NCBI GenBank assembly: GCA_904063045.1
Contig: CAJFCJ010000007.1
Span: forward strand, 1,632,873-1,696,872
Direction: 5' to 3'
DNA: 64,000 nt
Source: Dimorphilus gyrociliatus
Taxonomy: Eukaryota > Animalia > Annelida
Part shown: positions 2,975-26,926 of the stretch, piece by piece
Layout: each line of letters begins with the position of its first letter
How positions within the stretch are numbered: position 1 is the first letter of the stretch
Notes under the pieces: generated by a model
The model's database searches: none
What the model was told of the DNA's origin: nothing
Seen by the model: the letters and a program-made list of their open reading frames with translations, nothing else
Position numbers and translations under genes: made by a program

Positions 2975-5651
2975 TTAATAGCTCTGTTCTTGAACAATTC
3001 GAACAGCTTCTCTGACAGCATCCTCAATATTTTGAAAATGGGGACATTCTTGGGTAATTTCAAATAAGTAAGTGCGAGCCCTGTTGTAATCTTTGATTGC
3101 ATTCTCAGTTAACTAGAAAAAATAATGAGAATATAAGAATAATAAGTATTAACAGCTATGTTTTCGTAATTACCTCCTCTCCAGAAATTTTTTTCGTGTT
3201 AATACTTAAGATACAAAAAATTACTTTTCGACCCAATCCGGAGTAGTAAGCCGCCTACAAATAATATTAAGATATGAAATTTACATTTCCATTTTAAAAT
3301 GCTACTTTAGAATTAACATACCTCAAGCATAGAAGTAATTCCTCGTGTCTGGGATGTTATTACATAAAGAAGTGCTTTACAATGGTCCTTGACTGACGCT
3401 TCGCGAGCGATGTATCTGGTGGTCCATTCTTGTTTCTTAGGATTATAGTAGGTGAGACCTGCTTTGTCTAATATAGGTATTGCTATTTCCTCTCTCCATA
3501 ATGAATCTGCGCAAGTCCCTCCTAAGAAAATATCATAATCTTGAACTGATTTTGTTCGTATCAACTCTGGACAACTTTGAGAACGACCAATTAACCAATC
3601 GTAAATAACTATGGGAAAACGAACAATTCCTCTAAGGATTGATGCAACGCTCAACTGTCGTTCGTTTTTAAATTCTGTAACTAAACAGTAAAACTCTTCT
3701 AGATTGAACTTTTTATCTGGGCCAGAAGAATGCCAGACCCATTTCGGCAAATCAGCGGATGTTAAATATTTAAAAGCTTCGTTTATTTCATCTCTATTTA
3801 AATAATCAGCACCATGCTTGTCGAATGCTTCCTTTATTTGCCTGAAAAATCATTCACCTAATTAAGAAAGAAAAATAAACTCAGGAATTTACAACCGGAA
3901 TTTATCGGATATCCTAACGTGCGGATGCTTAACTGGGATGGCACCATCTTTCAAAGTGAGCTCCTCAAGGGGAATGTCCTCGTGTAAAACGCGACGAAGG
4001 CACTCAAGCGCAACATCTATATCACTAAAAACTGGAATACCTCGTCTTTCTACTAAATGAGTTAGGTAGGCATGACTTCGACATAAATCTTCATATTCTC
4101 TATTTAATTGTTAAATATAGCTTTCTCGAGAAATATCATAAGATAACCTACATTTCAGAAAGCTTTTCGCCTGCGACTTCTTTATGTGGTCCATCGAAGC
4201 GTTTGATTATAAGAATTAAAGGTTTCCCTTTAGCTGCCAGATTGGCAGACTCTACCATGGAGGCTGTTGATCTAGTAACGTTATCAATCACAAAAAATAG
4301 AACTTCTGCACGGTCCTTAGCCTCAGTTTCTTGTTGTACTAACTCCTCGCTCCAATCATCTCTTTGCTATATACAATTTAACAAAACTTATTTTACTATC
4401 TTGAATATTTACGATTGGTTATAAAACCTATTAAGTATCCAGAAATAGTTCAGAGGACAATATTTTGGAAATGAATGAAAAATGTATGTATAAGATACTT
4501 TCAATAAAAACTAATGTAGCAAAAAAGACTGAACTCACTGGGTTATAAAAAGTCAGGTTATGTTTCATTAAAAAAGGGATAACAGTATCTCCTCTCCACG
4601 TTGTAGGATTACAAGATCCGCCTAAAAAAACTGAGAAAAAATTGAAAATAATATATATATTATCCAAGGAATGTTTGAATGCTGTCACGATATAAATTAA
4701 GGTTATATGCAAATAAGATATTTCAATTGAACTGAGGTGAGAAGGAAACGACATACTGTTAGCTTTTAAAGAGACCTAAAATTTCCTTAATATATGAAAA
4801 TACTTTAAAATCATTACAAATTTCAGAGTAGAGGGAGTTGCTTTTTAGTTTAGTTAGACTAAGAACACATCAAAAATTCCATGTAATTTAATTCCATCTG
4901 AGAATTTTCATTCTTTTGTTTAGAACGGCTAAGGGAAAGTCTCAACACATACCTTGAAAAGAAGATAAAGCTGAAACGTTGATTAGAGTAAGCATCAATC
5001 TACTCGTTTTCTTTTTTTTTAGAATAATGATTCTGACCAGTTGTTATTCGAAACTTACTGAAATCTCCACATTGTCTACATTTTGGTGGAGTCGCGTTGG
5101 GAGATTTTCTGTCCGCGGAACTAATGATGTACCATAAGGTATATGACAACATAATATAAAACAAATTAAACTGCTCTACCATTTTCTATATTCATCTTCT
5201 AAAACGCTAACAATATAGCAAAATTCACCGAATGATATCTTTTTTTCCAATCGCCCTGATATTTGACACGCGTCGTGAACGTATTCAACAACTAAATTAA
5301 TATTTGATTGTTAATAGTTTATGATTTTACAATATCAGCGATATACCTTGCGATTCTGCAGGATAAATATCTAAAATATGTAAACATTTTCTCAATTCAT
5401 TGCTTGTCAGCCAATTGTTAGAGTTATTGCCTTCGAATATTTCTCTCAATTTTCTGAAAGTAAAAATTAATCATGCTTAAACACGAAAATGACTCAAAAG
5501 GAACATTTTTCTATATAAGTTTTTCGATTGTTCAAATTTTACTAAGCCTATTCCGAGTGATAATGAGGTAGATTTACAAAAATCACAATAAAAAACTAAT
5601 CGCTCACTTGGTTTTTTCTCCAAAAACTGGCTTTTGATCGGGAGAAAACAT
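2975..5651 (-). CDS. raw: Raw-like protein: two nucleoside 2-deoxyribosyltransferase-like repeats with EF-hand-like segments; multi-exon
   Basis: Hand-spliced exons give VFLGGSCNPTTWR...TFYNP...TRSTASMVESA and DIFLGGTCADSLWR...TYYNP...TRGITSMLEAAYY...DYNRARTYL, the repeat seen in Drosophila Raw. ATG at 5651 (MFSPDQK), stop at 2975-2977. Some internal exon boundaries are uncertain. Confidence 0.72.
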
Positions 5652-5892
5652 CGATGACTACCACTTTAGCTGTTAACAAGCAGCCTTTATCATTAAGGTC
5701 TGAAATCTCGTTAATAAATTTGGACAGAATTTCGGGTAGCACAAAATGACGTATGTTTTATTTTTAGCAACTTACAAAATCGTGCAGATGGCACTGGTGA
5801 TAACCCAAAAATCTCTGACGTCATCACAACATTGGACGTCAGCACTCTTAACTGTAATAACCAATATTTTTCCTAATTAAGTGGCACAAATA
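5652..5892. promoter_or_regulatory. Bidirectional promoter between raw-like and the Lys-rich membrane protein gene
   Basis: 241 bp between divergent ATGs. It contains a perfect CRE (TGACGTCA, 5816-5823), a second GACGTCA and a CTCF-like TGCAGATGGCAC near 5783. Confidence 0.55.
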
Positions 5893-6857
5893 ATGGATTC
5901 GATGGAATTTTTGAATGTACAATTTGCTATACCAATAGTAGGTGTCGTTTTATGCGTATTTTTGGTTTTTGCTTTTGGATTTAGATCTGTTGGACAGCCT
6001 AGCTTTGAAGCAATAGGTGAAGTTGAAATAAAAAGAAGGAAGGGAAGAGAGGTCAAAAAAAATTCAAAGACCAAAGTTACTAATAGCACTACGATCATTG
6101 AAAAGTCTAAAAATGAACCTGAAAAGAAATCGACTGTTAAAAAGCGTTCTACAGAAAATAAACCTGTTAAACAGCTGTCGGTTAAGAAAAACGTTAATGA
6201 GAAGCCCCACAAACCAGTCGTAGAAGAAGAAATGACAATGAAGGACGGTGAATGGCAAACTTGTTTGTCTAAAAGAAGAAGCAGAAAACTGCGTGAAGAA
6301 AGTATAAGTAATGATTCAGATAAAGAAACACAAAAAAGTTCTACAAAGAAAGGAAAGTCAGCGGAAAATATGAATAGGAAAAAGGAAGAAAGGCCACAAA
6401 ACTCCAAGCAAAAGAGTAAACCACTGAAGGTTAGTACATATATAATTATATAGTAATAATATCTATTTTATGAGATTACAGAATATATAACTTTTCGTAT
6501 AGGAATCAGTTGAAAACTTGAATGCAACAAAATCATCCAACGTAAAGCCTACAGTTAGAAAGGAGGCTCTTAAAGAGGTTGAATCTAATCAGCCAACTAA
6601 GAAAGTTGAAGAAAAGTTGATAATAAATACTTCTGAAACAAGTAAGCATGACGATGGAATAAAAAGATTTGACACTAAATATTTTTTATTGCAGGTCAGG
6701 GGAAAAACATTGCAACCGAAAATTCACATTCCAAGGAAACTAACGGTAAATAAATAGAAATTTAAATGAAAAAAGACCAATAGCATATATTCTTTTTTTA
6801 TTAGACTGGCAGGAAGCCCCACGAAAATCGAAGAAAAAGACCAGAAGAGAGCAGTGA
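5893..6857 (+). CDS. N-terminally anchored Lys-rich ER membrane protein (RRBP1/kinectin/LYRIC-like); 4 exons
   Basis: A single N-terminal TM segment (IPIVGVVLCVFLVFAFGF) is followed by a long K/E/S-rich tail with GEWQT and DWQEAPRKSKKK motifs. Short GT-AG introns lie at 6430-6502, about 6640-6694 and about 6747-6805. Family assignment is tentative. Confidence 0.55.
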
Positions 6858-7165
6858 TACGCCACTAGAAAATTTACCAAACGGCAGTTTTACTTTTGAA
6901 CTGTGATTTGTTTTCGATTTATGTAATTTTCATTATGAATGTTGTTGTCACTAAGTGACAAACGCCATACCTACTGCAGAATGGTGGTGCAACTAGACGC
7001 ATTCCAATATATATCGCCATTCTATTTAGGCACAATATCACTGTTAGTTCATTTGTTGTCTTTTAAACTTAAGTTAACATATTAAGGACTAGTCTTTCTA
7101 CATGTGGTTGGTGGTTATGTTTAAATTCATAATGTAAACTGCGTCATTAATTTTTGAAAATATAT

Positions 7166-7852
7166 ATGGCTAAGAAGTCTTCTATATTCAGTGTGATAAA
7201 TTTAATAATACTACCTCTATCTTTGGTTCTCTTGATTATAGGATATTCTTTACCTAGATGGGCACGGGCAGAATACAAACTGGGTGATAAGGCTCCTTTT
7301 GATAGAAATTTTGACATAAATAAACCGAGCGAAGCCTTAGTTAAATTTAGTCTGTGGCAAGCTTGTTTCAAATCGAAATGTCTAAGAACTGAAACACTGT
7401 TAACAGAAGAATATTTATGCGTTAGTTTTAACTCAAACGAGGGTGGGTCTATCATTTTAGCTCAAGTTTGTGGAATACTCAGTATCTGCATTTGCTGTTG
7501 TCTTGTTTTATCACTGATTTTTGCAACTTTTTCGACTAAATTATCAAAAACCGAATCAACAGTTATAGTTTTTGGATTTTGCTTAACATCTTCAGTCTTG
7601 TCGTTAATACCGCCTATATTATATTTATCTAAAGCCATTCCCATAATCACTAAGTATCCTCACCTTAAAAACGTTTTTTACGCTTATAAGTTATGTAAGG
7701 TTTATAAAGTTAAGGTAGGCTATGCATCTTATATTATTGTTACAGCAGCATGTTTACAACTATTTGGGGCCTTGTTTTCTTACTTCGCCTTTGGATCTAT
7801 TACAGACTTTCGTGAAACATCAATCAAATCTGCAGATGAGTCCGAGATTTGA
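7166..7852 (+). CDS. Claudin/PMP22-superfamily tetraspan membrane protein; intronless
   Basis: Four hydrophobic segments, a W...SLWQAC...C first-loop signature and a C-terminal class I PDZ-binding-like tail (ESEI). Confidence 0.7.
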   Translation: MAKKSSIFSVINLIILPLSLVLLIIGYSLPRWARAEYKLGDKAPFDRNFDINKPSEALVKFSLWQACFKSKCLRTETLLTEEYLCVSFNSNEGGSIILAQVCGILSICICCCLVLSLIFATFSTKLSKTESTVIVFGFCLTSSVLSLIPPILYLSKAIPIITKYPHLKNVFYAYKLCKVYKVKVGYASYIIVTAACLQLFGALFSYFAFGSITDFRETSIKSADESEI

Positions 7853-8174
7853 CCGAAAAGTTGTTAGGCATATCAACTTTTAAGATAAAGCCACGTGGCG
7901 TTTTGAAACATGGGAAATAATTAACATACTTTTGAAAGTTAAAATAGCATATCAGTTTATGAGATAACGTGACAATTAATATTATCTAACAAAATACAAT
8001 ATATCATCAGTTGTCAAGGAAGTTCAATATTGCTAAAATTATTGAACATCTTATTGTCATTTCTACATAACTATCAATATAGAAAAACAGTTTTCAAAGA
8101 ATTACTGTATAACTTTTGATGTTAAAATTTATAAGAGCAATCGGTTTTAAATTACACGCGCTATTTTTGGTTAA

Positions 8175-8211
8175 TCACGTGACATCGTAAAGCGTACCGC
8201 TGGTCACGTGA
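8175..8211. promoter_or_regulatory. Paired TCACGTGA E-boxes upstream of ZNF507
   Basis: TCACGTGA occurs at 8175-8182 and 8204-8211, about 140-175 bp before the ATG. Confidence 0.5.
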
Positions 8212-8350
8212 CCATTCGTCGCCATGATAGAAGCAGCATGATGCTTAGCCTGTAATCTTTATATTTCGATAAAGCTCTTGTAAATAGAGAGCTATAATCA
8301 ATTGACTATTTTTACAAAATCTTTGAATAGAATAGTAGATCATATTAAAT

Positions 8351-10381
8351 ATGTCTACGACCATTAATATTCAAAAATCAGATGGTACTGAAGTCCAAGC
8401 CCTAGTTCGGCTAGACGATGCCATTCGTTGGACCGAGGAAGAAAAAGCTGAAGAGAGTTTGACGATAAGACTTGGAAAATTACCTTCTAGAGTATATGAT
8501 TGTGCCCCATCAACCGAAGCTACCTTGGTTTTGGCTGAAAATTGGTCTTGCTGGAAGGATTCAAGATCAGGAGAGAGATATTATTGTTCGGACTGCGATT
8601 ATAGTAGCTCACAAAGGGCGTATATCAGACAACATGTCGACGTCACTCATTGCGACTTCAGACCATTCAAATGTCCTCTATGTGAATATGCTGGGAAGAG
8701 AAGTCATGCTCTGAGAGAACACATGTTACTTCACTCAAGAATCAGACCCTACAAGTGTGATGTGTGCCCAGCATCGTTCAGGAAGAAAAACCACTTGACT
8801 ACTCATAGCAAAACGCACATTAGGAAATCATCTTCATCTACTTGTCCATTTTGTAAGCTCCAAGTATCAAAGCTAACTCCATTGACAAAACATATTCGAA
8901 CTGTCCATAGCGATGACGCCATCGTTTGTGACTACTGCGAATATTTTACAATTAATATGGAAGAAATTGATGAGCATGTGTCTTCCCATGGAAACATTGC
9001 GACTTACAAGTGCGCACATTGTAATTTTTCTTGCAAGTTGAAGCAATTAATAGAATCACATGTCAAGCAAAAGCATCATGTGGAACAAAACAAAGAAGAT
9101 GAAAAGGAAGAACTGATATTGAAATGTTCTGTTTGCGGATTTTTAACACCCTCTCGCTCTGAATTAAAAGAGCACATGTCAGAACATATAGAATCCCAGG
9201 GTTTTGTGCATGATGAAGGCTTGTATAGATGCACAATTTGCTCATATACTTGCGAGATGCAGAGAACAATAAAGGCTCATATCTGGAAACATTCAGGTCA
9301 CAGGGATATAAGTTATCCCTGCTTTAATACTGGTGAGGAAAATGCTGCAGTGAAAATGGAAGCTAGTCCAAAGAGGATTGAAACAAATGATGGAGGTGAT
9401 TTGGTAGTTGGTTGTCAAGTAGACGTATTTTCCTCTGAAGAAAAAGATGTAGTTGTTGGGCACAATTACACATCATCCCGAAAACGAAAAAGAAATGAAT
9501 CGGAAGATGAAAGGATGGCTATAGCGAAATTTTTTGTGGAGAAATTGAACGATTTAGCTGTAACAGTAGTTCCAGAGAAAAAAAGTAACACGGATGAGAG
9601 CTGTTGTAGCTCCCCTCGCTCACACTCTCCAGGAATATCAAGTAGCCTCCTCGAGGTGGCTGAAACTTGTCTCAAAAGGGAAAATGGTAAGAGCTCAGAA
9701 ATTAAATGTTCTTTATGTGCGCATAGAGCAGAAACTACCGCCGATCTAGAAAAGCATGCATTGGAACAACACTGTACATTGAGAACGTTCAAGTGTAAAT
9801 CATGTTCAGCATCTTTTTATTACAAGAATCAGCTAAGAATTCACATGTCTGTTCACGAAAATGGCGAAGTGGCTGAATATGGATCATCCAAATGTTCTAC
9901 TTGTAATCGGATTTTCGAAACAGTAAATGAACTGGAAGAACATGTTAAGACAGATCATAATGCCAAAGACGGAACTCTTCAATGCTCACAATGTGACTTT
10001 GTTGCCATTTCGAGTAGAGCTTTAAAATCTCACCAAAAGCGTCATAAATGGGATGCTCGCTATGTAGCACACCCATTAGAGCAATACAAGTGCGCTTTAT
10101 GCGGTTATGTTTGTCATCATTTACCATCGTTAAAATCGCACATGTGGCGACATTCAGCTCATACCAACTATTCGTACGCCGCAACTAACGATGCAATCAA
10201 TGCAGCTTTAGATGGACGGTCCCATCCTCACACAGCTACTTTAGTAACTTTTCGTTGTTGTCAGTGCGGCTATGAAACTGATGAGCGACAAGAATTAACC
10301 GAGCATATGATTACTCATCAGGATATCATTGAAAAAACTCTTATGATTAATAAGGCAGCTCTTGGTCAAGCAGCTGTTTAA
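8351..10381 (+). CDS. ZNF507: Multi-C2H2 zinc finger protein, ZNF507-like; intronless
   Basis: 676-aa ORF with many C2H2 fingers. YKCALCGYVCHHLPSLKSHMWRH...NYSY...NDAINAA closely resembles the distinctive ZNF507 C-terminal finger and flank. Confidence 0.72.
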   Translation: MSTTINIQKSDGTEVQALVRLDDAIRWTEEEKAEESLTIRLGKLPSRVYDCAPSTEATLVLAENWSCWKDSRSGERYYCSDCDYSSSQRAYIRQHVDVTHCDFRPFKCPLCEYAGKRSHALREHMLLHSRIRPYKCDVCPASFRKKNHLTTHSKTHIRKSSSSTCPFCKLQVSKLTPLTKHIRTVHSDDAIVCDYCEYFTINMEEIDEHVSSHGNIATYKCAHCNFSCKLKQLIESHVKQKHHVEQNKEDEKEELILKCSVCGFLTPSRSELKEHMSEHIESQGFVHDEGLYRCTICSYTCEMQRTIKAHIWKHSGHRDISYPCFNTGEENAAVKMEASPKRIETNDGGDLVVGCQVDVFSSEEKDVVVGHNYTSSRKRKRNESEDERMAIAKFFVEKLNDLAVTVVPEKKSNTDESCCSSPRSHSPGISSSLLEVAETCLKRENGKSSEIKCSLCAHRAETTADLEKHALEQHCTLRTFKCKSCSASFYYKNQLRIHMSVHENGEVAEYGSSKCSTCNRIFETVNELEEHVKTDHNAKDGTLQCSQCDFVAISSRALKSHQKRHKWDARYVAHPLEQYKCALCGYVCHHLPSLKSHMWRHSAHTNYSYAATNDAINAALDGRSHPHTATLVTFRCCQCGYETDERQELTEHMITHQDIIEKTLMINKAALGQAAV

Positions 10382-10478
10382 TATTTTGTGAATGGTGCAC
10401 ACTTCTTATTGTCTCAAAATTTGTATACAAAGATTTGCTTCGCAGTAGCGTTTGTTAGATAGATTTTTTGTTGCGGTT

Positions 10479-11722
10479 TCAAATAAATAGTTTTCGCCCT
10501 TGTGCAGGCGTTTTAAAGTTCATTTTTTTCTCATTGTCTTTATCAGCATAATAGTCTAATAGTTCTCTTAAACTAATTTTCAATTCCTCCGTACCTATTC
10601 GCTCTTTGGCTGATATATTGTAAATTTTATCAAACCTAAACGATCGCGAGGGAACATATTCCTCAGGAACTTTGTCAAAATAACTCTCAACGCTTAAAGC
10701 CTGTTTTGCAATTAAATCCGCTTGATCAGAGGCATTAGCTAAATCGATTTTGTTAATGGCGAGAACTGCTGGCTTCTCCAAAAGGCTAGGATTAAACAAT
10801 TCTAATTCTTTAATTAAGAAGATGATATTTTCTATTGCTGATCGACAAGGATGAGCTGCTGATAGTTGAAAACCATAGACATCAACGAGAAATAAAAGTA
10901 ACTTTGTTCTTTCAACATGTTTTAGGAACTTGTGGCCCATTCCTACATTAAGATGGGCTCCTTCAACTAATCCTGGCAGGTCTGCAATGCTGATTTTTCT
11001 TAAATCTGAATATTGCATTATTCCCAGTTGAGGCCGTAAAGTTGTAAAAGGATATGAAGCAATCCGGGGTCTAGCTCTTGAAATAGCTGACAGTATTGTA
11101 GACTTTCCTGCATTTGGGAAGCCAACTAGTCCTATATCTGCTATAAGTTTTAAATCCAGACTAACAGATCTGGCCTCCCCCTTCTGACCAAGAAAGTTGT
11201 TCTTCTCTTGCCCCCCTTCACCACCTTTTGAGACTAACACTCTTTCATTTCGCCTGTTGACTTCTCCTATAACAGAGTTATCATCCAATCTTACAGTTAT
11301 CCCTATAGGAACAGGAATTTCAATACTTTTCCCCCGTCTCCCTAATAACTCCGTCTTCCTACAGGATTATGATAGTAATCTAATAAAACAATTAATACTA
11401 TTTATTCAAATTACCTGCTTTTCTTCCCTCCTTCAGCTAGAAACCGTTTTGCTGGTGACAACTCGTCTAATTTTTTCAGAGTAGCAGTTTCACTTCCAAC
11501 TACATAAACATTACCTCCTTTGCCTCCAACTCCTCCAAAGCTAGAAAGCCCATCACCACCTTTACCTCCTTTTACGTAAACACGCAATTTATCAATGAAC
11601 TTGCTTCCCCCCTGATTGATATCATATTATCGCTCACTGCGGCATGTTTAAATTGAAATAGTTACCCCTTTTACACGAAGATTTTTATATTGTGCTAGAA
11701 AGTATCTTGTCATATAAACCAT
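10479..11722 (-). CDS. GTPBP10: Obg-family GTPase GTPBP10; 3 exons
   Basis: KFIDKLRVYVKGGKGGDG start, G1 GFPNAGKST, G2 YPFTT, G3 DLPG and G4 NKID. ATG at 11722 is joined by a phase-0 intron. Confidence 0.9.
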
Positions 11723-19467: not shown

Positions 19468-21210
19468 ATGATTCGGAGCTATCTTAGAGCGTCCGAAGCC
19501 TTGCGAACAAATCTTTCTAATTCAACTGTTACAAATCCTCATCTAATAGACAAAACAGTATTTGATTATGTTATAGTCGGTGCTGGGTCTGCTGGCTGTG
19601 TTCTTGCTAATAGACTAAGTGAGGACGGAAAGAGGACGGTTTTGAGTATTGAAGCAGGACCCAAGGACAGCAGCTGGAAAATTCGTATGCCAGCAGCTTT
19701 GATGTACAATTTATGCGATGACACATACAACTGGTATTATCATACTATTCCACAGAAAAATATGAATAACAGAGTTTTTTATTGGCCCCGTGGAAGAGTT
19801 TGGGGTGGTTCATCTTCCTTAAATGCTATGGCTTATGTTAGAGGTCATAAAAACGACTATGATTCATGGAAAGGTGGATGGAATTATGAAGATGTGCTGC
19901 CTTACTTTAAAAAAGCTCAATGTCATGAATTAGCCAAGCCAAATGACTACTATAGAGGCTCTACTGGTCCATTACATGTTAGTTGTGGAAAGTTAAATAA
20001 TCCTCTCTATGAGGCTTGGATACAGGCGGGAATTGATGCAGGCTTGCCTTATACAGATGACATGAATGGTGAGCAACAAGAGGGTGTTGGAAAAATGGAT
20101 ATGACAATTCGTAACGGGGAGAGATGGAGTGCAGCAGATGCTTATTTGAAGCCTGCTCTAAAGAGGTGAGTATTTGACTTGAATTATTCTAAACGAATCT
20201 AACAACTTTAATACTCTATCAGGAAGAATGTGTTTGCTGTAACGAATTGTCTAGTAAATAGAGTGCTGTTTGAAGGAAAAAGAGCTGTTGGCGTTGAATT
20301 TCTTGTTGATAGAAAACATAAGGTATCCGTAAGAGCTAGAAAAGAGATTATCTTGAGCGGAGGAGCAATTAACTCTCCGCAATTACTTTTGCTATCTGGC
20401 ATCGGGCCGACTGAACATCTGAAAGAGCATGGTATTGAAGTGAAGCAGGATTTACCAGGGGTTGGTCAGAATCTTCAAGACCACTTAGAAATGTATGTTC
20501 AGTACAGCTGCAAGGAAAACATCACACTGTATTCCTACCAATGGAAATTTCCCCATGTTATGATCAGAGCAGGTGCAGAATGGTTTCTAACAAAATCAGG
20601 TCCATGCGCTAGTTCTCATTTAGAAGTGGGAGGTTTTGCCAAAACGGATGATTCGGTTTCACATCCCAACGTACAATGGCACTTTCTACCATCGACTGTT
20701 GTGGATCATGGAAGAAAAATGGGAGACAGACACGCATTTCAAGCTCATGCTGGAACTATGAGACCACTTTCTCGAGGTTCTCTCAAATTGAGATCGAAAA
20801 ATCCGTTCGATCATCCTATCATAGATGCGAACTATCTAAAGGAAGAATTTGATTTAGTAGAATTGCGCGAGGCTCTAAAATATACTAGGAGAATATTCCA
20901 ACAAAAAAGTTTTGATTCATTCAGAGGTGAAGAATTACTCCCAGGGAAGCACATTGATTCAGACAAGAAAATTGATGATTTCATCAGAAACAAAGCAGAT
21001 ACAGCTTATCATCCATGCTCAACATGTAAAATGGGAGATGATAGCTCAAGTGTTGTTGATTTTAATTGCAAAGTTCACGGGATAGAAGGACTAAGAGTAG
21101 TTGATTCTTCAATTTTTCCATCTATGATTAGTGGTAACCTTAACGCACCAACAATAATGTTGGCAGAAAAAGCGTCTGATCATATCTTGGGAAAACTTAA
21201 TTATATCTAA
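19468..21210 (+). CDS. CHDH: Choline dehydrogenase (GMC oxidoreductase); 2 exons with a 57-nt intron at 20166-20222
   Basis: GAGSAG FAD motif, RGRVWGGSSSLNAM, GVGQNLQDH, TAYHPCSTCKMG and GNLNAPTIM. Confidence 0.92.
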
Positions 21211-21420: not shown

Positions 21421-22737
21421 CTAATTTGCTTTTGATTCGCTAGCAGTTTCAAAAAAATTTCGTAAAAACCCATTTTTTGTTGGAGTAGATACGATTACTG
21501 CGTCTGAAACATCCATTTCTGATGCGCGATTGCTCATAGTCATATATCCCTGATCAGTTGTTGACTCACCCAAAGTATTTTCGCTTTGTAAAGTACTGTT
21601 TATAGCAGGTTTTTCTTTTTCTTTCTGCTCAAAAGGAATGTCTTTTTCACTCATTTCGTCTTCGTCCTCATCCTCATCATCATCAAGACAGAAGCTCAAT
21701 TGACCTGTGAATGGGGCAGTAGTGCCAGAGTTTTGTCTTATTCGATAAGCTCGCTTAGTTCCATACAAGTCTGGGCTGTTTGCTAGAATAGGGGATATGT
21801 TGAGACGAAAGGCTGATGAAGCAGAGCGATGTGATGATCTTGTTTGTGGAGTAATGGGAGAAAGCTTTGGTGAAAATTTGTTTAGTCCACAAGGTGACTC
21901 GATGTATTTTCCTGCTGGAAACTTTGGAGTTATATGAGGTGATTCTTCAGTAGCATACACTCTTCGTACAAGACGATATTCATTAGGAGTCATACCAGAG
22001 GGTCCTTCATCGCCTTCTATAAGTTTCCTGTAATTATCACACATTAAAGTTCCTCTTCCATCAGTAAAGTAAGCTTTAGGAAGAGCTTCAGTGGCCAGCA
22101 TAGGCCGCCAATGAGCGCGCTTATATAAAGGCAAATACACTATATGGGAAGCATCACACAAGTCATCCTCAGTTGTGGGTAGAAGACGCAGAAATGGAAC
22201 TCTGCCGATATGTTTCCAGTCTGGATCAATACACCATTCAGTTTGAGTAGAACAATCAACTCCTTTTTTCTCTTTTTCATCTTCCACTTCTTCATCAGAT
22301 TCAACTATATCTACTGATATTCCTCCAGGAGAAGGTGGACCAGTGTAATTCTCGAAAAATGTTTTTGACATTTCTGCTTTATCTGCTAATATTTCCCTAT
22401 GTTCACATGAGGCAATAGAATGCTGATGAATTATACTATGGTGGTCATCCTCCATTAATGAGACGTTAGGTGAGGGAAGACTATCGTTGAAAAGTTCCAT
22501 ATGCTTTACATTAGTAAAAGTTGACGGACTCCATTCCACCTTCTGATCGAAAAAAGGATTAAGAGGAATATTATGTTTTATAGCATAATTTCGACGATCG
22601 CTTGGTTCCAAGGTTGCCAAATACGTTTCTAGTTCACATTTTGATATATTGTTGAAATGAATACATTTAGACGACACATCACAGTCACAATTTTCATTCA
22701 ATTTCTCTGCCGATTTTTCAGCTTTGTTGCTAGACAT
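21421..22737 (-). CDS. BORA: Aurora borealis-like disordered cell-cycle protein; intronless
   Basis: NPFF...WSPSTF, FF....PPSP, STQT, many SP/TP sites, LSPI and a DQGYMT segment resembling the BORA beta-TrCP degron. Similarity is motif-level only. Confidence 0.5.
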   Translation of the reverse strand: MSSNKAEKSAEKLNENCDCDVSSKCIHFNNISKCELETYLATLEPSDRRNYAIKHNIPLNPFFDQKVEWSPSTFTNVKHMELFNDSLPSPNVSLMEDDHHSIIHQHSIASCEHREILADKAEMSKTFFENYTGPPSPGGISVDIVESDEEVEDEKEKKGVDCSTQTEWCIDPDWKHIGRVPFLRLLPTTEDDLCDASHIVYLPLYKRAHWRPMLATEALPKAYFTDGRGTLMCDNYRKLIEGDEGPSGMTPNEYRLVRRVYATEESPHITPKFPAGKYIESPCGLNKFSPKLSPITPQTRSSHRSASSAFRLNISPILANSPDLYGTKRAYRIRQNSGTTAPFTGQLSFCLDDDEDEDEDEMSEKDIPFEQKEKEKPAINSTLQSENTLGESTTDQGYMTMSNRASEMDVSDAVIVSTPTKNGFLRNFFETASESKAN

Positions 22738-23006
22738 TTTTTTTTTAAAACTCAAAAATGACCTTCACCTTTTAAACGTTTCGTTGTTATCGTATAAATA
22801 TCATATTTTGCCTCTTGCTTATCAGAAACAAATTGAACACTAGATTTTTAGATTTTTAACGTTGTTGGGGTTTACGAATACAACGTTTGCTGTTTCACTT
22901 CCGGTTTTAGGTCTGTCGGCACCACACTCTGTTTCAATAGAAAAGTGCAATTTTTAGAGTTTGTTTTTCATTATTAAATTCACCTGTGACATTTGTGTAT
23001 TTTAAA

Positions 23007-24266
23007 ATGGAAGAGGAAGAGCCTGTAAGTATCTTGCTTAACTTTTTTTAAAACTGAACTCTTTCCATATTCGGGAAGTGTTTCTTGTGCACTTTGAGTA
23101 CATTTAGCCTCTCAACTTTTCTTTTCGTATCCGAATAATGTCTGAGTCATTATAATTAGATTTTTTATTTAAACATTATAATTTTTTAGCAACTTTTGAT
23201 ACGTTCTAACATTAATTTTTCTGTATTTCAGGTTTTCGACTCCAGTATGAAGAAGAAAAAGAAAAAGAAGCCTGCAGATTTGGCACCAACTAAAGAGTGT
23301 GATAATTCAGAAAATCGAATTGAACAGACGAAGAAAGTCGTAGAAACCTTAGGTGAGGTAGGAAATAAGCTGAATGATTTTGATATCAATGAGGACTTTC
23401 TTGGAAAGAAAAAAAAAAAGAAAAAGCCCATAACAGATTCTCGACTACAAGATCAGAGCGAAAATAATCGAGATGAATCCAGTGAGAAGATTGATGATGA
23501 ATTTTCATTTGACAAAAAGAAGAAAAAAAGAAAAGGTCGTCCAATCGAAATAGACCAAGTAGATGGTCTTCAAGTCAACCAAAATGCTGATACTAAAATC
23601 TCAATTGATTATAATAGGGAATATACTTACGAAGAACTATTACAAAGGGTGTTTGATATCATGAAAGAGAAAAATCCAGATATGATTGCTGGAGAGAAAA
23701 AGAGATTTGTTATGAAGCCTCCTCAAGTAATGAGAGTAGGTACAAAGAAGAGTTCGTTTTCAAATTTTTATGAAATTTGTAAAATGTGAGTAGTGTGACT
23801 AAATTGACGAACAGTTATATTAAAGCTTTATTATTAGGTTACATAGAGTCCCAAAGCATTTAATGGCTTTCTTGTTGGCTGAATTAGGCACCAGGTAAGC
23901 AGAAATTATATAAAATAATTAAAGGATAATGAAAGTCATAAAACAGTGGGGCCATCGATGGAAATAATCAATTAATCATTAAAGGAAGGTTTCAGCAGAA
24001 ACAAATTGAAAGTGTTTTGAGACGATATATAAGTGAGTTAACCAGCATAAGAGTTCATTAAATTCAATAACTTATCAATTAATTTTATAGAGGAATATGT
24101 AACGTGCCATACGTGCAAGTCGCCTGACACTCTCCTCTCCAAAGATACTCGATTATACTTTTTACAATGCGAAAGTTGCGGTTCAAGATGTTCTGTCGCT
24201 TCTATCAAGTCTGGTTTCCAAGCTGTGACAGGAAAGAGAGCTGCTATTAGAGCAAAAACTACTTAA
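23007..24266 (+). CDS. EIF2S2: Translation initiation factor eIF2 beta. Exons 23007-23024, 23232-23785, 23838-23894, 23947-24032, 24091-24266
   Basis: Three poly-Lys boxes, [28 protein letters not shown] and the zinc ribbon CHTC...CESC, ending [15 protein letters not shown]. Confidence 0.95.
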
Positions 24267-24523
24267 TATTTTGCAAAAATTTCATTTATAAATAAAAGCT
24301 TATAAATTTCAAATAGTGTTATAAAAATCCTAAAGATGGCGCTTGACATAATGAATAAATAACATTTCTGACGCAAAAATCTAACTTTGTGGTGCAAAGT
24401 ATATTTTCAAGTGCCACGATATTGTTAATGAAAGCAGTTTATTGCATCAGAATTAGTGGTATATAAAAGCAAAGGTAGCTATAGTTCAATATTCACAATA
24501 TTCAAAATTGAAATATAAGAAAG

Positions 24524-25428
24524 ATGCTAGTTAAAAATATTAAGAAAATGGATTTGAATAAGACTTTAAGTGAAGAAGAGGGGAGTATATGTCTTGACTC
24601 CCCTGCCTTGGAAAGAAAGAAAGACAAAATATTAGAAATCGCAAATACAGATTTAATGATATCAGAAGATAGTGGTAATATTCCAGATATTGACGAACAT
24701 TTTTCTCGTAAGAAACATAAACATAGAAAAAAAAATCGAGCTATGAATCCGAGTTCTGATTTGGAAGATAGTGATCTCTACAGTTATGATGAGGTATCAG
24801 TAGTTTTTCTTTAGTTCAAAGAATATTTGAAGCTTTACTAACAGCTCTTGTCAATGTTGCGAAAAACGGAAAGTTTAAGGCTAATTGAAAAAGGTCAAAA
24901 GGAAAAAACAATTGTTATTCCACTTCCCATCACTGCAAGAGTGTCTAAAGTTAAGTCAGCTCTGATAAACTTTGTGGCCATATGTAAGGCTTTAAACAGG
25001 GAACCTAAAATGTTTATCAAGTTCATTATGGTTGAATTTGGTACTCAGTAAGAAGAAACGTGCTTCATTATACAATTATGATTATTTATGATTTTTTTAA
25101 AACAGAGCTTCCATAGATAAAAACAATTGGCTAATTCTGAGAGGGATATACAAAGAGTATCACTTTACAGCAGTTATAAAAAGATTTATAAGTACAATAT
25201 TCATTTGATAACTAGTTATTAATTTATAAATGTTAAACACTTTTATTTCCTTCTTCAGGATCTTACGTTAAGTGTGTTGCATGTAGAGGATTTAATACAG
25301 AAATTCACCGTTTAAAAAGAGAATTATACGTTGTGTGCTATTATTGCGAAGCAAAAACAAATGTTGAACCAATCGTCGATTTGTACAAGGCTTTAACAGG
25401 TGTTCCAGGGGAAAAAAGGGATAATTAG
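24524..25428 (+). CDS. Divergent eIF2-beta paralog in tandem. Exons 24524-24793, 24845-25047, 25106-25191, 25259-25428
   Basis: Open spliced frame with one Lys-rich box, YSYDELL, NFVAICKALNREPK, EFGTQASID and zinc ribbon CVAC...CYYC. Two intron positions are shared with the neighbouring EIF2S2. Confidence 0.8.
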
Positions 25429-25538
25429 ATTTTTGCGTAATGATGGACTTTTGACAAAAAAATTTTCAGAAATTATATTAGAATTTTATCATCGAATTAA
25501 TCATTTTGGATCGTAAAATGATTCGTCAGCAGTGAAAC

Positions 25539-26926
25539 TCAATTTCGTAGGGTTGAAACTGTTAAAGAAGAATATTAATAGGAATTTATAGATTTAAAAA
25601 AAAAACATGCCAAATCCCATTCCCTGTAAAAAGAGGCGAAATGATTCTGTCAATTTGATCGGTTCCTCCTCCATAATGAGGCCACCACAGGAAAATTTGA
25701 CCCATGAGCAATTTGACGGATCCAATCGAGCATTCATTTCTATAGTATCGTTCAAATGAGGCGAAAAATCACTGGTCACGAGTAATACTGGGCATCTGAT
25801 CATTCGTGCTAGTTTCTTCTTGGCCGGTAAAGTCTTCAAAATTTCTTTTGAAGAATTCATTTAAGAAAGAATGAGTTTACTAACCTCTCTAATGATTCTT
25901 AAATCAGTTCGTTTTATATATGATTCTATAAACTTTCCCAAGTTAAATGGGTTGCATTTTTCTATATACTTGGAATATGAAGATATAAGATTTTCATTCG
26001 TTGTACCAGTTTTATTTCCAAACCAATGCCAAATTAAATATTCTTTCACTCTGTCTGTTATTGCACCTTTGTTTAAATTATGTATGTTAACCTATATAAA
26101 CATAGTTGTATTTTTACTTCATTTTTAATGTCAATAAAAATTAAATACCTTTTGATAACCCCATTCAGTCCAACTAGCTTTGGATGCTGTACAATTTATC
26201 AAGATTAAGCCATCTACTTTGTCAGGATACATCAGCTAAAATGAAATCCTAAAATAAGATTATATTGTTAAATTGGAGGAAATTTAAGCAAACCGAAAAT
26301 CTGCTTAAAATATTTCCACCAGCGCCAGAACCAAAGCCAATGAAGCGATCAACGCTGTAAAGAAAATTACTAAGATGTAAAGAAATCATCATTTTACTAT
26401 TTTTTACTTGTAAAATTTCATTATGAAATATATCATTTCAGAAAGTTGGTCCATCGTAGGATACTTGAAGCTGAAAGACACATAACAATATAAAATAATC
26501 TAATAGCTTTATTCATATTTCCATCAATTACGCAATATATAATATTTGTGAACTTACGATGGGGATAAATTTTGTGCTGCATCTTCTTGCCCTGGGGCAT
26601 TTATATGATAAACATTGAAGTCTCTTAAGATGGGAAGCACTCTCGGATGCTTAAAATAGCCACCAAAACTGGACATACCTGAAGTCCAAATAAAAGACTT
26701 AGGAAACAGTAAAGCAAAACGCAAATTTACCATTCAATCCTATGTCGTGAAAAGTAAATATCGCTCTTTTTTTTCCCTCCCCAGAAACTTGAACTTTAAT
26801 TTTCCCACAACTTCCTGTATCAATTATATCCTCCCTGTTTATGTCATGACTGACATTATCTTTCAGAGAATCGGGTATAGTTTCACGTAACTGGATGTCT
26901 TCTAAGTCATTATCATCATTGAACAT
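25539..26926 (-). CDS. NDRG: NDRG-family alpha/beta-hydrolase-fold protein; multi-exon
   Basis: [31 protein letters not shown] and [10 protein letters not shown]...[19 protein letters not shown]. The last exon is inferred through a GC-AG intron. Confidence 0.88.

Follow-up and report, generated by a model that had tools for sequence, protein, structure and literature searches.

Start-codon selection and the integrated stress response both centre on eIF2, whose beta and gamma subunits rank with the best-conserved proteins of animals. The mammalian copies Eif2s3y and the EIF2S3 retrogene concern gamma only and stay close to their parent sequence. They are described as extra eIF2-subunit copies with specialised, germline-linked use (PMC7869416, PMC7734959), and the 5MP/BZW proteins are presented as natural competitors in the eIF2–eIF5 network (PMC5062967, PMC4176352). 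In yeast eIF2-beta, helix alpha1 comprises residues 128–143, of which Y131 and S132 are needed for gamma binding, T238 and S264 contact the ribose of the GTP or GDP on gamma, and the Lys boxes bind eIF5 (PMC11230868). Here we describe beta-prime, a tandem paralog of eIF2-beta in the annelid Dimorphilus gyrociliatus that is a genuine protein-coding gene and is transcribed; our literature searches turned up no description of a diverged eIF2-beta paralog for this species or for any other animal.

Beta-prime lies at positions 24524–25428 on the plus strand of the window, the 64,000-nt stretch of AT-rich, animal-type DNA with introns of about 55 nt that we analysed. Its four exons (24524–24793, 24845–25047, 25106–25191 and 25259–25428), separated by introns that all read GT..AG, join into 729 nt, that is, 242 codons plus TAG. 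The resulting model equals, letter for letter, the public protein P0001 (DgyrCDS5986, CAD5117189.1), a 242-aa record that phmmer retrieved with the second exon alone. The initiation codon stands 258 bp past the stop of a conserved eIF2-beta gene, C7a (23007–24266, plus strand), which encodes 296 aa with three Lys boxes in exons 23007–23024, 23232–23785, 23838–23894, 23947–24032 and 24091–24266, the last of them identical to human at 50 of 56 positions. The initial annotation, made from the letters of the DNA, had proposed a second gene 258 bp downstream of EIF2S2 with four cleanly spliced, stop-free exons, and both statements hold: the distance follows from the coordinates (24266 to 24524), and the exon structure agrees with P0001 and with the joints seen in RNA-like contigs (see below). 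The intergenic spacer of 257 nt (24267–24523, plus strand) contains two AATAAA signals for C7a, at 24291 and 24354, and a TATA-like TATATAAAAG motif at 24460, 64 nt 5′ of the beta-prime ATG; within 270 nt past the beta-prime stop, AATAAA is absent.

Several kinds of search assigned beta-prime to the eIF2-beta family. Profile PF01873 matched residues 108–218 with 88 bits, compared with a cut-off of 27, and was covered from position 6 to position 116 of 117; a protein-atlas search arrived at the same family and at nothing further. BLASTP against the C7a protein gave 31% identity (E 3e-30). Human eIF2-beta (1.3e-24) was the best match among PDB sequences, with archaeal aIF2-beta and yeast eIF2-beta also matched, whereas the match to eIF5 was far weaker (1e-8). 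The AF2 model of beta-prime has a disordered stretch of low confidence and without secondary structure at residues 1–84, a helix at 88–99 and a confident core of helix-turn-helix (HTH) and zinc ribbon at 130–222, and Foldseek placed eIF2-beta and aIF2-beta chains first (E 1.6e-9). The build of the protein is thus unchanged: a disordered N-tail, alpha1, an HTH alpha/beta domain and a C4 zinc ribbon. The N-terminal domain of eIF5 has the same IF2B/IF5 fold (E 1e-8); a relationship of beta-prime to eIF5 or 5MP was considered and ruled out by the difference between the eIF2-beta and eIF5 matches (1.3e-24 and 1e-8) and by its lack of a W2 domain.

A PF01873 search of the whole genome found three eIF2-beta loci, besides eIF5. 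The third locus, on contig C1 (2725881–2727170, minus strand), is a second conserved gene, intact, with 5 exons encoding 285 aa and three Lys boxes. eIF2-beta, which had been taken as single-copy in the initial annotation, is therefore not so in this genome, where two conserved genes accompany beta-prime. The C1 and C7a proteins are 73% identical overall, and we estimate their C-terminal halves to be about 95% identical. The two genes are sisters in the core-domain tree (99/99), and both are old and constrained, since their synonymous sites are saturated while the core dN is 0.04.

The intron–exon structure bears on how beta-prime arose. Exon 1 (24524–24793, plus strand; codons 1–90) encodes the disordered N-tail with its Lys-box remnants, including RKKHKHRKKNR at 24707–24739, and ends with the start of alpha1 (Y86-S-Y88-D-E, 24779–24793, plus strand). 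Intron 1 (24794–24844, plus strand; 51 nt, GT..AG, phase 0) falls at YSYDE|LL, is private to beta-prime, being present in neither conserved eIF2-beta gene, and closes the frame when read through. Exon 2 (24845–25047, plus strand) carries the remainder of alpha1, which extends to about residue 99, followed by the linker and the opening half of the HTH alpha/beta domain; on its own it matches PF01873 with E 1.2e-7 and, by phmmer, residues 91–157 of P0001. Intron 2 (25048–25105, plus strand; 58 nt, phase 2) coincides in position and phase with the one that follows 'LGT' in C7a and in the C1 gene. It is followed by exon 3 (25106–25191, plus strand; 86 nt), which completes the HTH domain and carries Y173 (yeast F217) and H177 (yeast Q221). 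Intron 3 (25192–25258, plus strand; 67 nt, phase 1) corresponds in position and phase to the last intron of both conserved genes. Exon 4 (25259–25428, plus strand) encodes the C4 zinc ribbon (25273–25347) and a degenerate tail, ends with TAG at 25426–25428 and matches PF01873 alone with E 5.6e-3.

Beta-prime and C7a thus have two introns in common, at the same place and phase (phase 2 after 'GT' and phase 1 after 'F/Y-I'). Beta-prime lacks two introns of C7a, one after codon 6 and one at CKM|LHR, so that the earlier count of two common introns and one new intron stands, but that of a single missing intron does not. The CKM|LHR intron is also missing from the C1 gene, which in turn carries an additional one between Lys boxes 1 and 2. 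Because introns are present, two of them at shared positions, beta-prime is a DNA-level duplicate and not a retrocopy; the three introns, two at parental sites, and the tandem placement rule out a processed retrocopy and bear out the earlier reading of an old duplication at the level of DNA. The further possibility that the beta-prime exons are alternative exons of C7a was ruled out, as no joint links exons of both genes.

Transcription was assessed in run X1, the sole public run that holds this stretch, which dates from 2017, is kept as contigs and is not on record as RNA. Its contigs are nevertheless cDNA-like, because every intron of three neighbouring genes has been removed, and the transcripts are plus-strand, as the joints read GT..AG in the sense direction. 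One contig of 2859 nt had lost all three beta-prime introns at the exact modelled GT..AG borders (joints 24791>24843 (cut +2), 25047>25106 and 25191>25259), and all four C7a introns were spliced in the run. The same contig contains C7a in spliced form, runs unbroken from 24091 to 24791, the whole spacer included, and then merges with a convergent minus-strand gene whose introns read CT..AC. Since it is unbroken from C7a through the spacer, part or all of the beta-prime signal could be read-through; with the spacer covered by an RNA contig, either read-through from C7a or an upstream start is possible for beta-prime. Depth in this run is one figure per contig, which carries no expression level, cannot rank genes and gives no tissue or stage. 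Expression, which the initial annotation had named as a check, is in this way seen in one assembled contig of a single run, without a level: beta-prime is transcribed and is spliced as modelled. Among the remaining signals of the run, a loose end at 24091 is a spliced fragment of the C1 gene, and loose ends at 23049 and 24300 with a joint 23072>24280 were taken as spurious (matches of about 21 nt).

The convergent gene 3′ of beta-prime is putatively NDRG-like by reading of its open reading frames; it has a GC..AG intron at 25559–25610 (minus strand), and its 3′ end overlaps that of beta-prime (25429–25558 region). On the other side, directly upstream of C7a, lies a single-exon open reading frame of 444 aa (21421–22755, minus strand), to which no family could be assigned by eye and which is covered by an RNA contig of 2195 nt. 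Farther upstream, at 19468–21210 (plus strand), two large open reading frames form an apparent, putative GMC oxidoreductase (choline-dehydrogenase-like), recognized by eye from the translations.

The coding frame of beta-prime has a single stop, the terminal one, and the other five frames contain 10–28 stops; all six splice-site dinucleotides are intact. We simulated neutral decay by letting the conserved coding sequence drift at the base composition of the window to 40% amino-acid identity, a lesser divergence than the actual 32%. The frame stayed open in none of 2000 simulations (mean, 12 stops), indicating that selection held it open for most of its history. That the frame was long kept open by selection is therefore clear, and neutral decay, the alternative raised with the original proposal, fails to explain it; the constraint so shown concerns most of the history of the gene, and a recent relaxation of selection is possible. 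Under this constraint the protein has changed strongly: its terminal branch in the core-domain tree measures 6.4 substitutions per site, the median being 0.014, it evolved more than 100 times faster than both conserved eIF2-beta genes of the same genome, and it is altered at 60 of the 101 columns that show at least 90% conservation across 23 canonical eIF2-beta proteins. A dN/dS between paralogs was tried as a constraint test and proved uninformative, dS being saturated.

Searches for relatives of beta-prime returned little. A word-indexed protein search with P0001 gave no match but itself, and phmmer with exon 2 against 1.84 billion representatives returned only the query at E ≤1e-10 and six sequences at E ≤1e-3, with no ortholog among them. 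No relative emerged from two metagenome scans, the first using P0001 by itself and the second an alignment of P0001 and P0003, in collections from which records of this or a near genome may be left out. As no ortholog was found, a dN/dS for beta-prime itself is unobtainable. P0003 is a diverged eIF2-beta of a eukaryote, encoded without introns (224 aa) at 853–1527 on the plus strand of L009 (ENA ERZ893782, contig k147_3781790), and a word-indexed search with it likewise gave no match but itself. Like beta-prime it is short and diverged, has a single Lys box and is without the conserved tail. The two proteins are 40% identical over 115 aa. At 38 conserved columns both depart from the canonical proteins, and at 15 of these they agree on the new residue, the replacement of Q221 by H among them; P0003 is equally near to beta-prime and to canonical eIF2-beta (41% over 159 aa). 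P0003 groups with beta-prime in the tree (83/77), which may reflect long-branch attraction, and the pair could represent either an ortholog group or convergence. In the AU test a Dimorphilus-only clade including beta-prime was not rejected (p 0.19). Given this value and the possible long-branch attraction to P0003, we rejected the tree placement of beta-prime as unusable; an origin within the Dimorphilus lineage is the simplest reading, as judged from the AU test and the tandem position.

Next, we mapped the residues of beta-prime onto the yeast Sui3 chain by HMMER alignment. As the initial annotation had stated, all four zinc cysteines are kept (C192, C195, C213 and C216; yeast C236, C239, C259 and C262), and the positions of both SUI3 start-codon-fidelity mutations are indeed changed, L254 to E208 and S264 to A218. 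In the same ribbon, T238 is replaced by A194 and G263 by E217, and R253 is kept as R207; in the HTH domain, Q221 is replaced by H177. The nucleotide-contacting pair of functional eIF2-beta is thereby lost, the T238 and S264 positions both being Ala. The gamma-binding helix, described earlier as kept, is kept in its first half (YSYDELLS, with Y88 equivalent to yeast Y131), but its second half has lost three hydrophobics, the canonical V-F-D-I-M being replaced by L-R-K-T-E; the yeast S132 position is Asp in beta-prime and Glu in the conserved eIF2-beta genes of the worm. Retention of one of three Lys boxes was correctly read: the third is present in degraded form (RKKHKHRKKNR), and VKNIKK and ERKKDK are remnants of boxes 1 and 2, so that beta-prime does not have the three Lys boxes that mark functional eIF2-beta. 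At the C terminus, the FQAVTGKR motif is degraded to YKALTGVPGEKR. The conserved tail motif is accordingly broken, as proposed, but the tail itself is degenerate (YKALTGVPGEKR) rather than gone.

A genome search with PF09173 revealed two eIF2-gamma genes. One (C7:1427415–1428749) is conserved, nearly identical to human in the 110-residue stretch tested. The other, gamma-prime (P0007, CAD5126957.1; contig C111, 896–2212, plus strand), is intronless; its product of 438 aa combines a GTP_EFTU and an eIF2_C domain and shows 47% identity to the conserved gamma. A copy of gamma-prime that is 99.3% identical occurs on a JGI environmental contig (L018, sample 3300019033), with 14 synonymous and 3 non-synonymous differences; gamma-prime is under purifying selection, as the resulting dN/dS is 0.057. 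eIF2-alpha and eIF5 have one locus each in the genome. Contig C111 measures 47.9 kb, with 30% GC, a Helitron, LTR elements and animal-type genes. We considered C111 as a contaminant contig; these same features fit this worm, which falls short of proof. The Helitron-like element, with a Pif1-type helicase and Helitron-like N-terminal open reading frames, is at 3740–7798 (minus strand) and adjoins gamma-prime; LTR-retrotransposon open reading frames lie farther along the contig, parts of which (about 8000–11500) read as N.

In the beta-binding patch of gamma-prime (yeast 276–297), 14 of 22 residues are changed, compared with 5 of 22 between the conserved gamma of the worm and that of human. With 64% of its residues changed, the patch is not plainly more divergent than the remainder of gamma-prime, where 53% are changed. 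We predicted the complex of beta-prime residues 78–242 with gamma-prime, as one pairing; it scored 0.60, the best of 3 controls scoring 0.02, and the verdict was weak support. The runs agreed in at least 51% of contacts, with a partner pLDDT of at least 69. For calibration, 51 of 78 solved complexes and 2 of 108 mismatched pairs attained the mark used; scores of 0.60 or less comprised only 5 of those 78 solved complexes and all 4 passing mismatches (of 180). Alignment A3, whose 66 gamma-prime homologs include 64 archaeal ones, and alignment A4 played no part in the prediction. Because eIF2 beta–gamma complexes have already been solved, the score may come from the memory of the model; it does not discriminate gamma-prime from the conserved gamma.

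These observations allow us to propose a role for beta-prime. We put at about even the chance that it is a specialised, putative beta-type subunit, which is anchored to a GTPase of the eIF2-gamma type, is weakly linked to eIF5 and eIF2B and makes an altered contact on the nucleotide side. Beta-prime would still dock on such a GTPase via the first half of alpha1 (YSYDELLS), a plausible partner being the equally diverged, purifying-selected gamma-prime, and the two together would give a variant eIF2. The loss of three hydrophobics from the second half of alpha1 speaks against such docking. Weak binding of eIF5 and eIF2B-epsilon would be expected, because two of the three Lys boxes are lost, and the zinc-binding domain would be predicted to sit differently on the nucleotide pocket, because the residues at T238, S264 and L254 are replaced; Sui- mutations act at this site in yeast. 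A stronger form of this proposal, which we regard as unlikely, is that of a candidate second, orthogonal eIF2, in which beta-prime pairs specifically with gamma-prime through a co-diverged interface. Such a complex would largely escape eIF5 and eIF2B control, because beta-prime lacks most of the Lys boxes, and could deliver Met-tRNAi during shutdown of canonical eIF2, perhaps with another start-codon stringency.

The initial annotation had left room for both an alternative eIF2 and a competitor, of which the former is the more concrete, because gamma-prime exists in the genome. As a competitor or decoy, beta-prime would bind the conserved gamma, fail at recruitment of eIF5 and eIF2B-epsilon or at holding Met-tRNAi, and so dampen or re-tune canonical eIF2. 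This would suit a protein in which the first half of alpha1 (YSYDELLS) is retained together with the counterpart of yeast Y131, while two Lys boxes are gone and T238 and S264 are replaced, and whose position 258 bp behind C7a, on a common RNA contig, makes co-expression possible; the three lost alpha1 hydrophobics, however, argue against tight binding to an unchanged gamma patch, and the co-diverged gamma-prime is the simpler partner, so we give the competitor a low probability. The changes at 60 of 101 conserved columns, the very long branch and the replaced GTP-touching residues might instead mean that the protein has left eIF2 altogether, its IF2B/IF5 fold and zinc ribbon being reused for another partner or for RNA, without Met-tRNAi delivery. 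We consider such a new function quite improbable: alpha1, which of the elements outside the fold is the most specific to gamma, is better kept than any other part of the N-terminal half, the domains stand in their usual order, and the complex prediction with gamma-prime gave weak support, not none.

The question of whether the gene is still in use at all bears equally on the specialised-subunit reading that we prefer. Beta-prime, long constrained, could now be drifting to loss as a read-through by-product of the highly expressed C7a that yields little or no protein, as the continuity of the RNA contig over the spacer, the missing AATAAA past the stop and the failure to find an ortholog in 1.84 billion representative proteins or two metagenome scans might suggest. 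Yet the open reading frame and the six splice-site dinucleotides are intact, the introns are removed precisely and a TATA-like motif stands 64 nt before the ATG; moreover, 0 of 2000 neutral runs kept the frame, and any loss of constraint must therefore be very recent. We rate decay of the gene as a poor prospect. As the genome also encodes a similarly diverged gamma subunit, the worm may assemble a second eIF2 under different control. What the genome holds is a transcribed beta copy stripped of Lys boxes and nucleotide-facing residues beside a constrained, diverged gamma copy, a natural experiment on the roles of the Lys boxes and the zinc-binding domain, on whether eIF2 can work outside eIF5/eIF2B control and on the co-evolution of subunit interfaces after duplication. 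Dimorphilus gyrociliatus, with its compact genome, could prove useful for studying specialised translation machinery.

Set beside the described systems, beta-prime resembles canonical eIF2-beta (EIF2S2/Sui3) in PF01873, in the order of N-tail, alpha1, HTH domain and C4 ribbon, in YSYDELL and in R207. It differs in being only about 32% identical, whereas animal eIF2-beta proteins are nearly invariant, and in being shorter than the conserved eIF2-beta proteins of the worm (242 aa versus 285–296). In other respects it is like archaeal aIF2-beta, which likewise has few or no Lys boxes and Ala at the yeast S264 position, and the zinc-ribbon exon matches Sulfolobus aIF2-beta (E 2e-4) better than yeast eIF2-beta (E 0.04). 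Unlike aIF2-beta, however, beta-prime possesses a eukaryote-type N-tail of 84 residues, in which remnants of Lys boxes persist, as well as introns common to the animal gene, and because of these the archaeal likeness is a matter of convergence or reversion, not of ancestry. The departure from the mammalian gamma copies is of another kind, since in Dimorphilus the beta and the gamma copies are both strongly diverged, at 32% and 47% identity, respectively.
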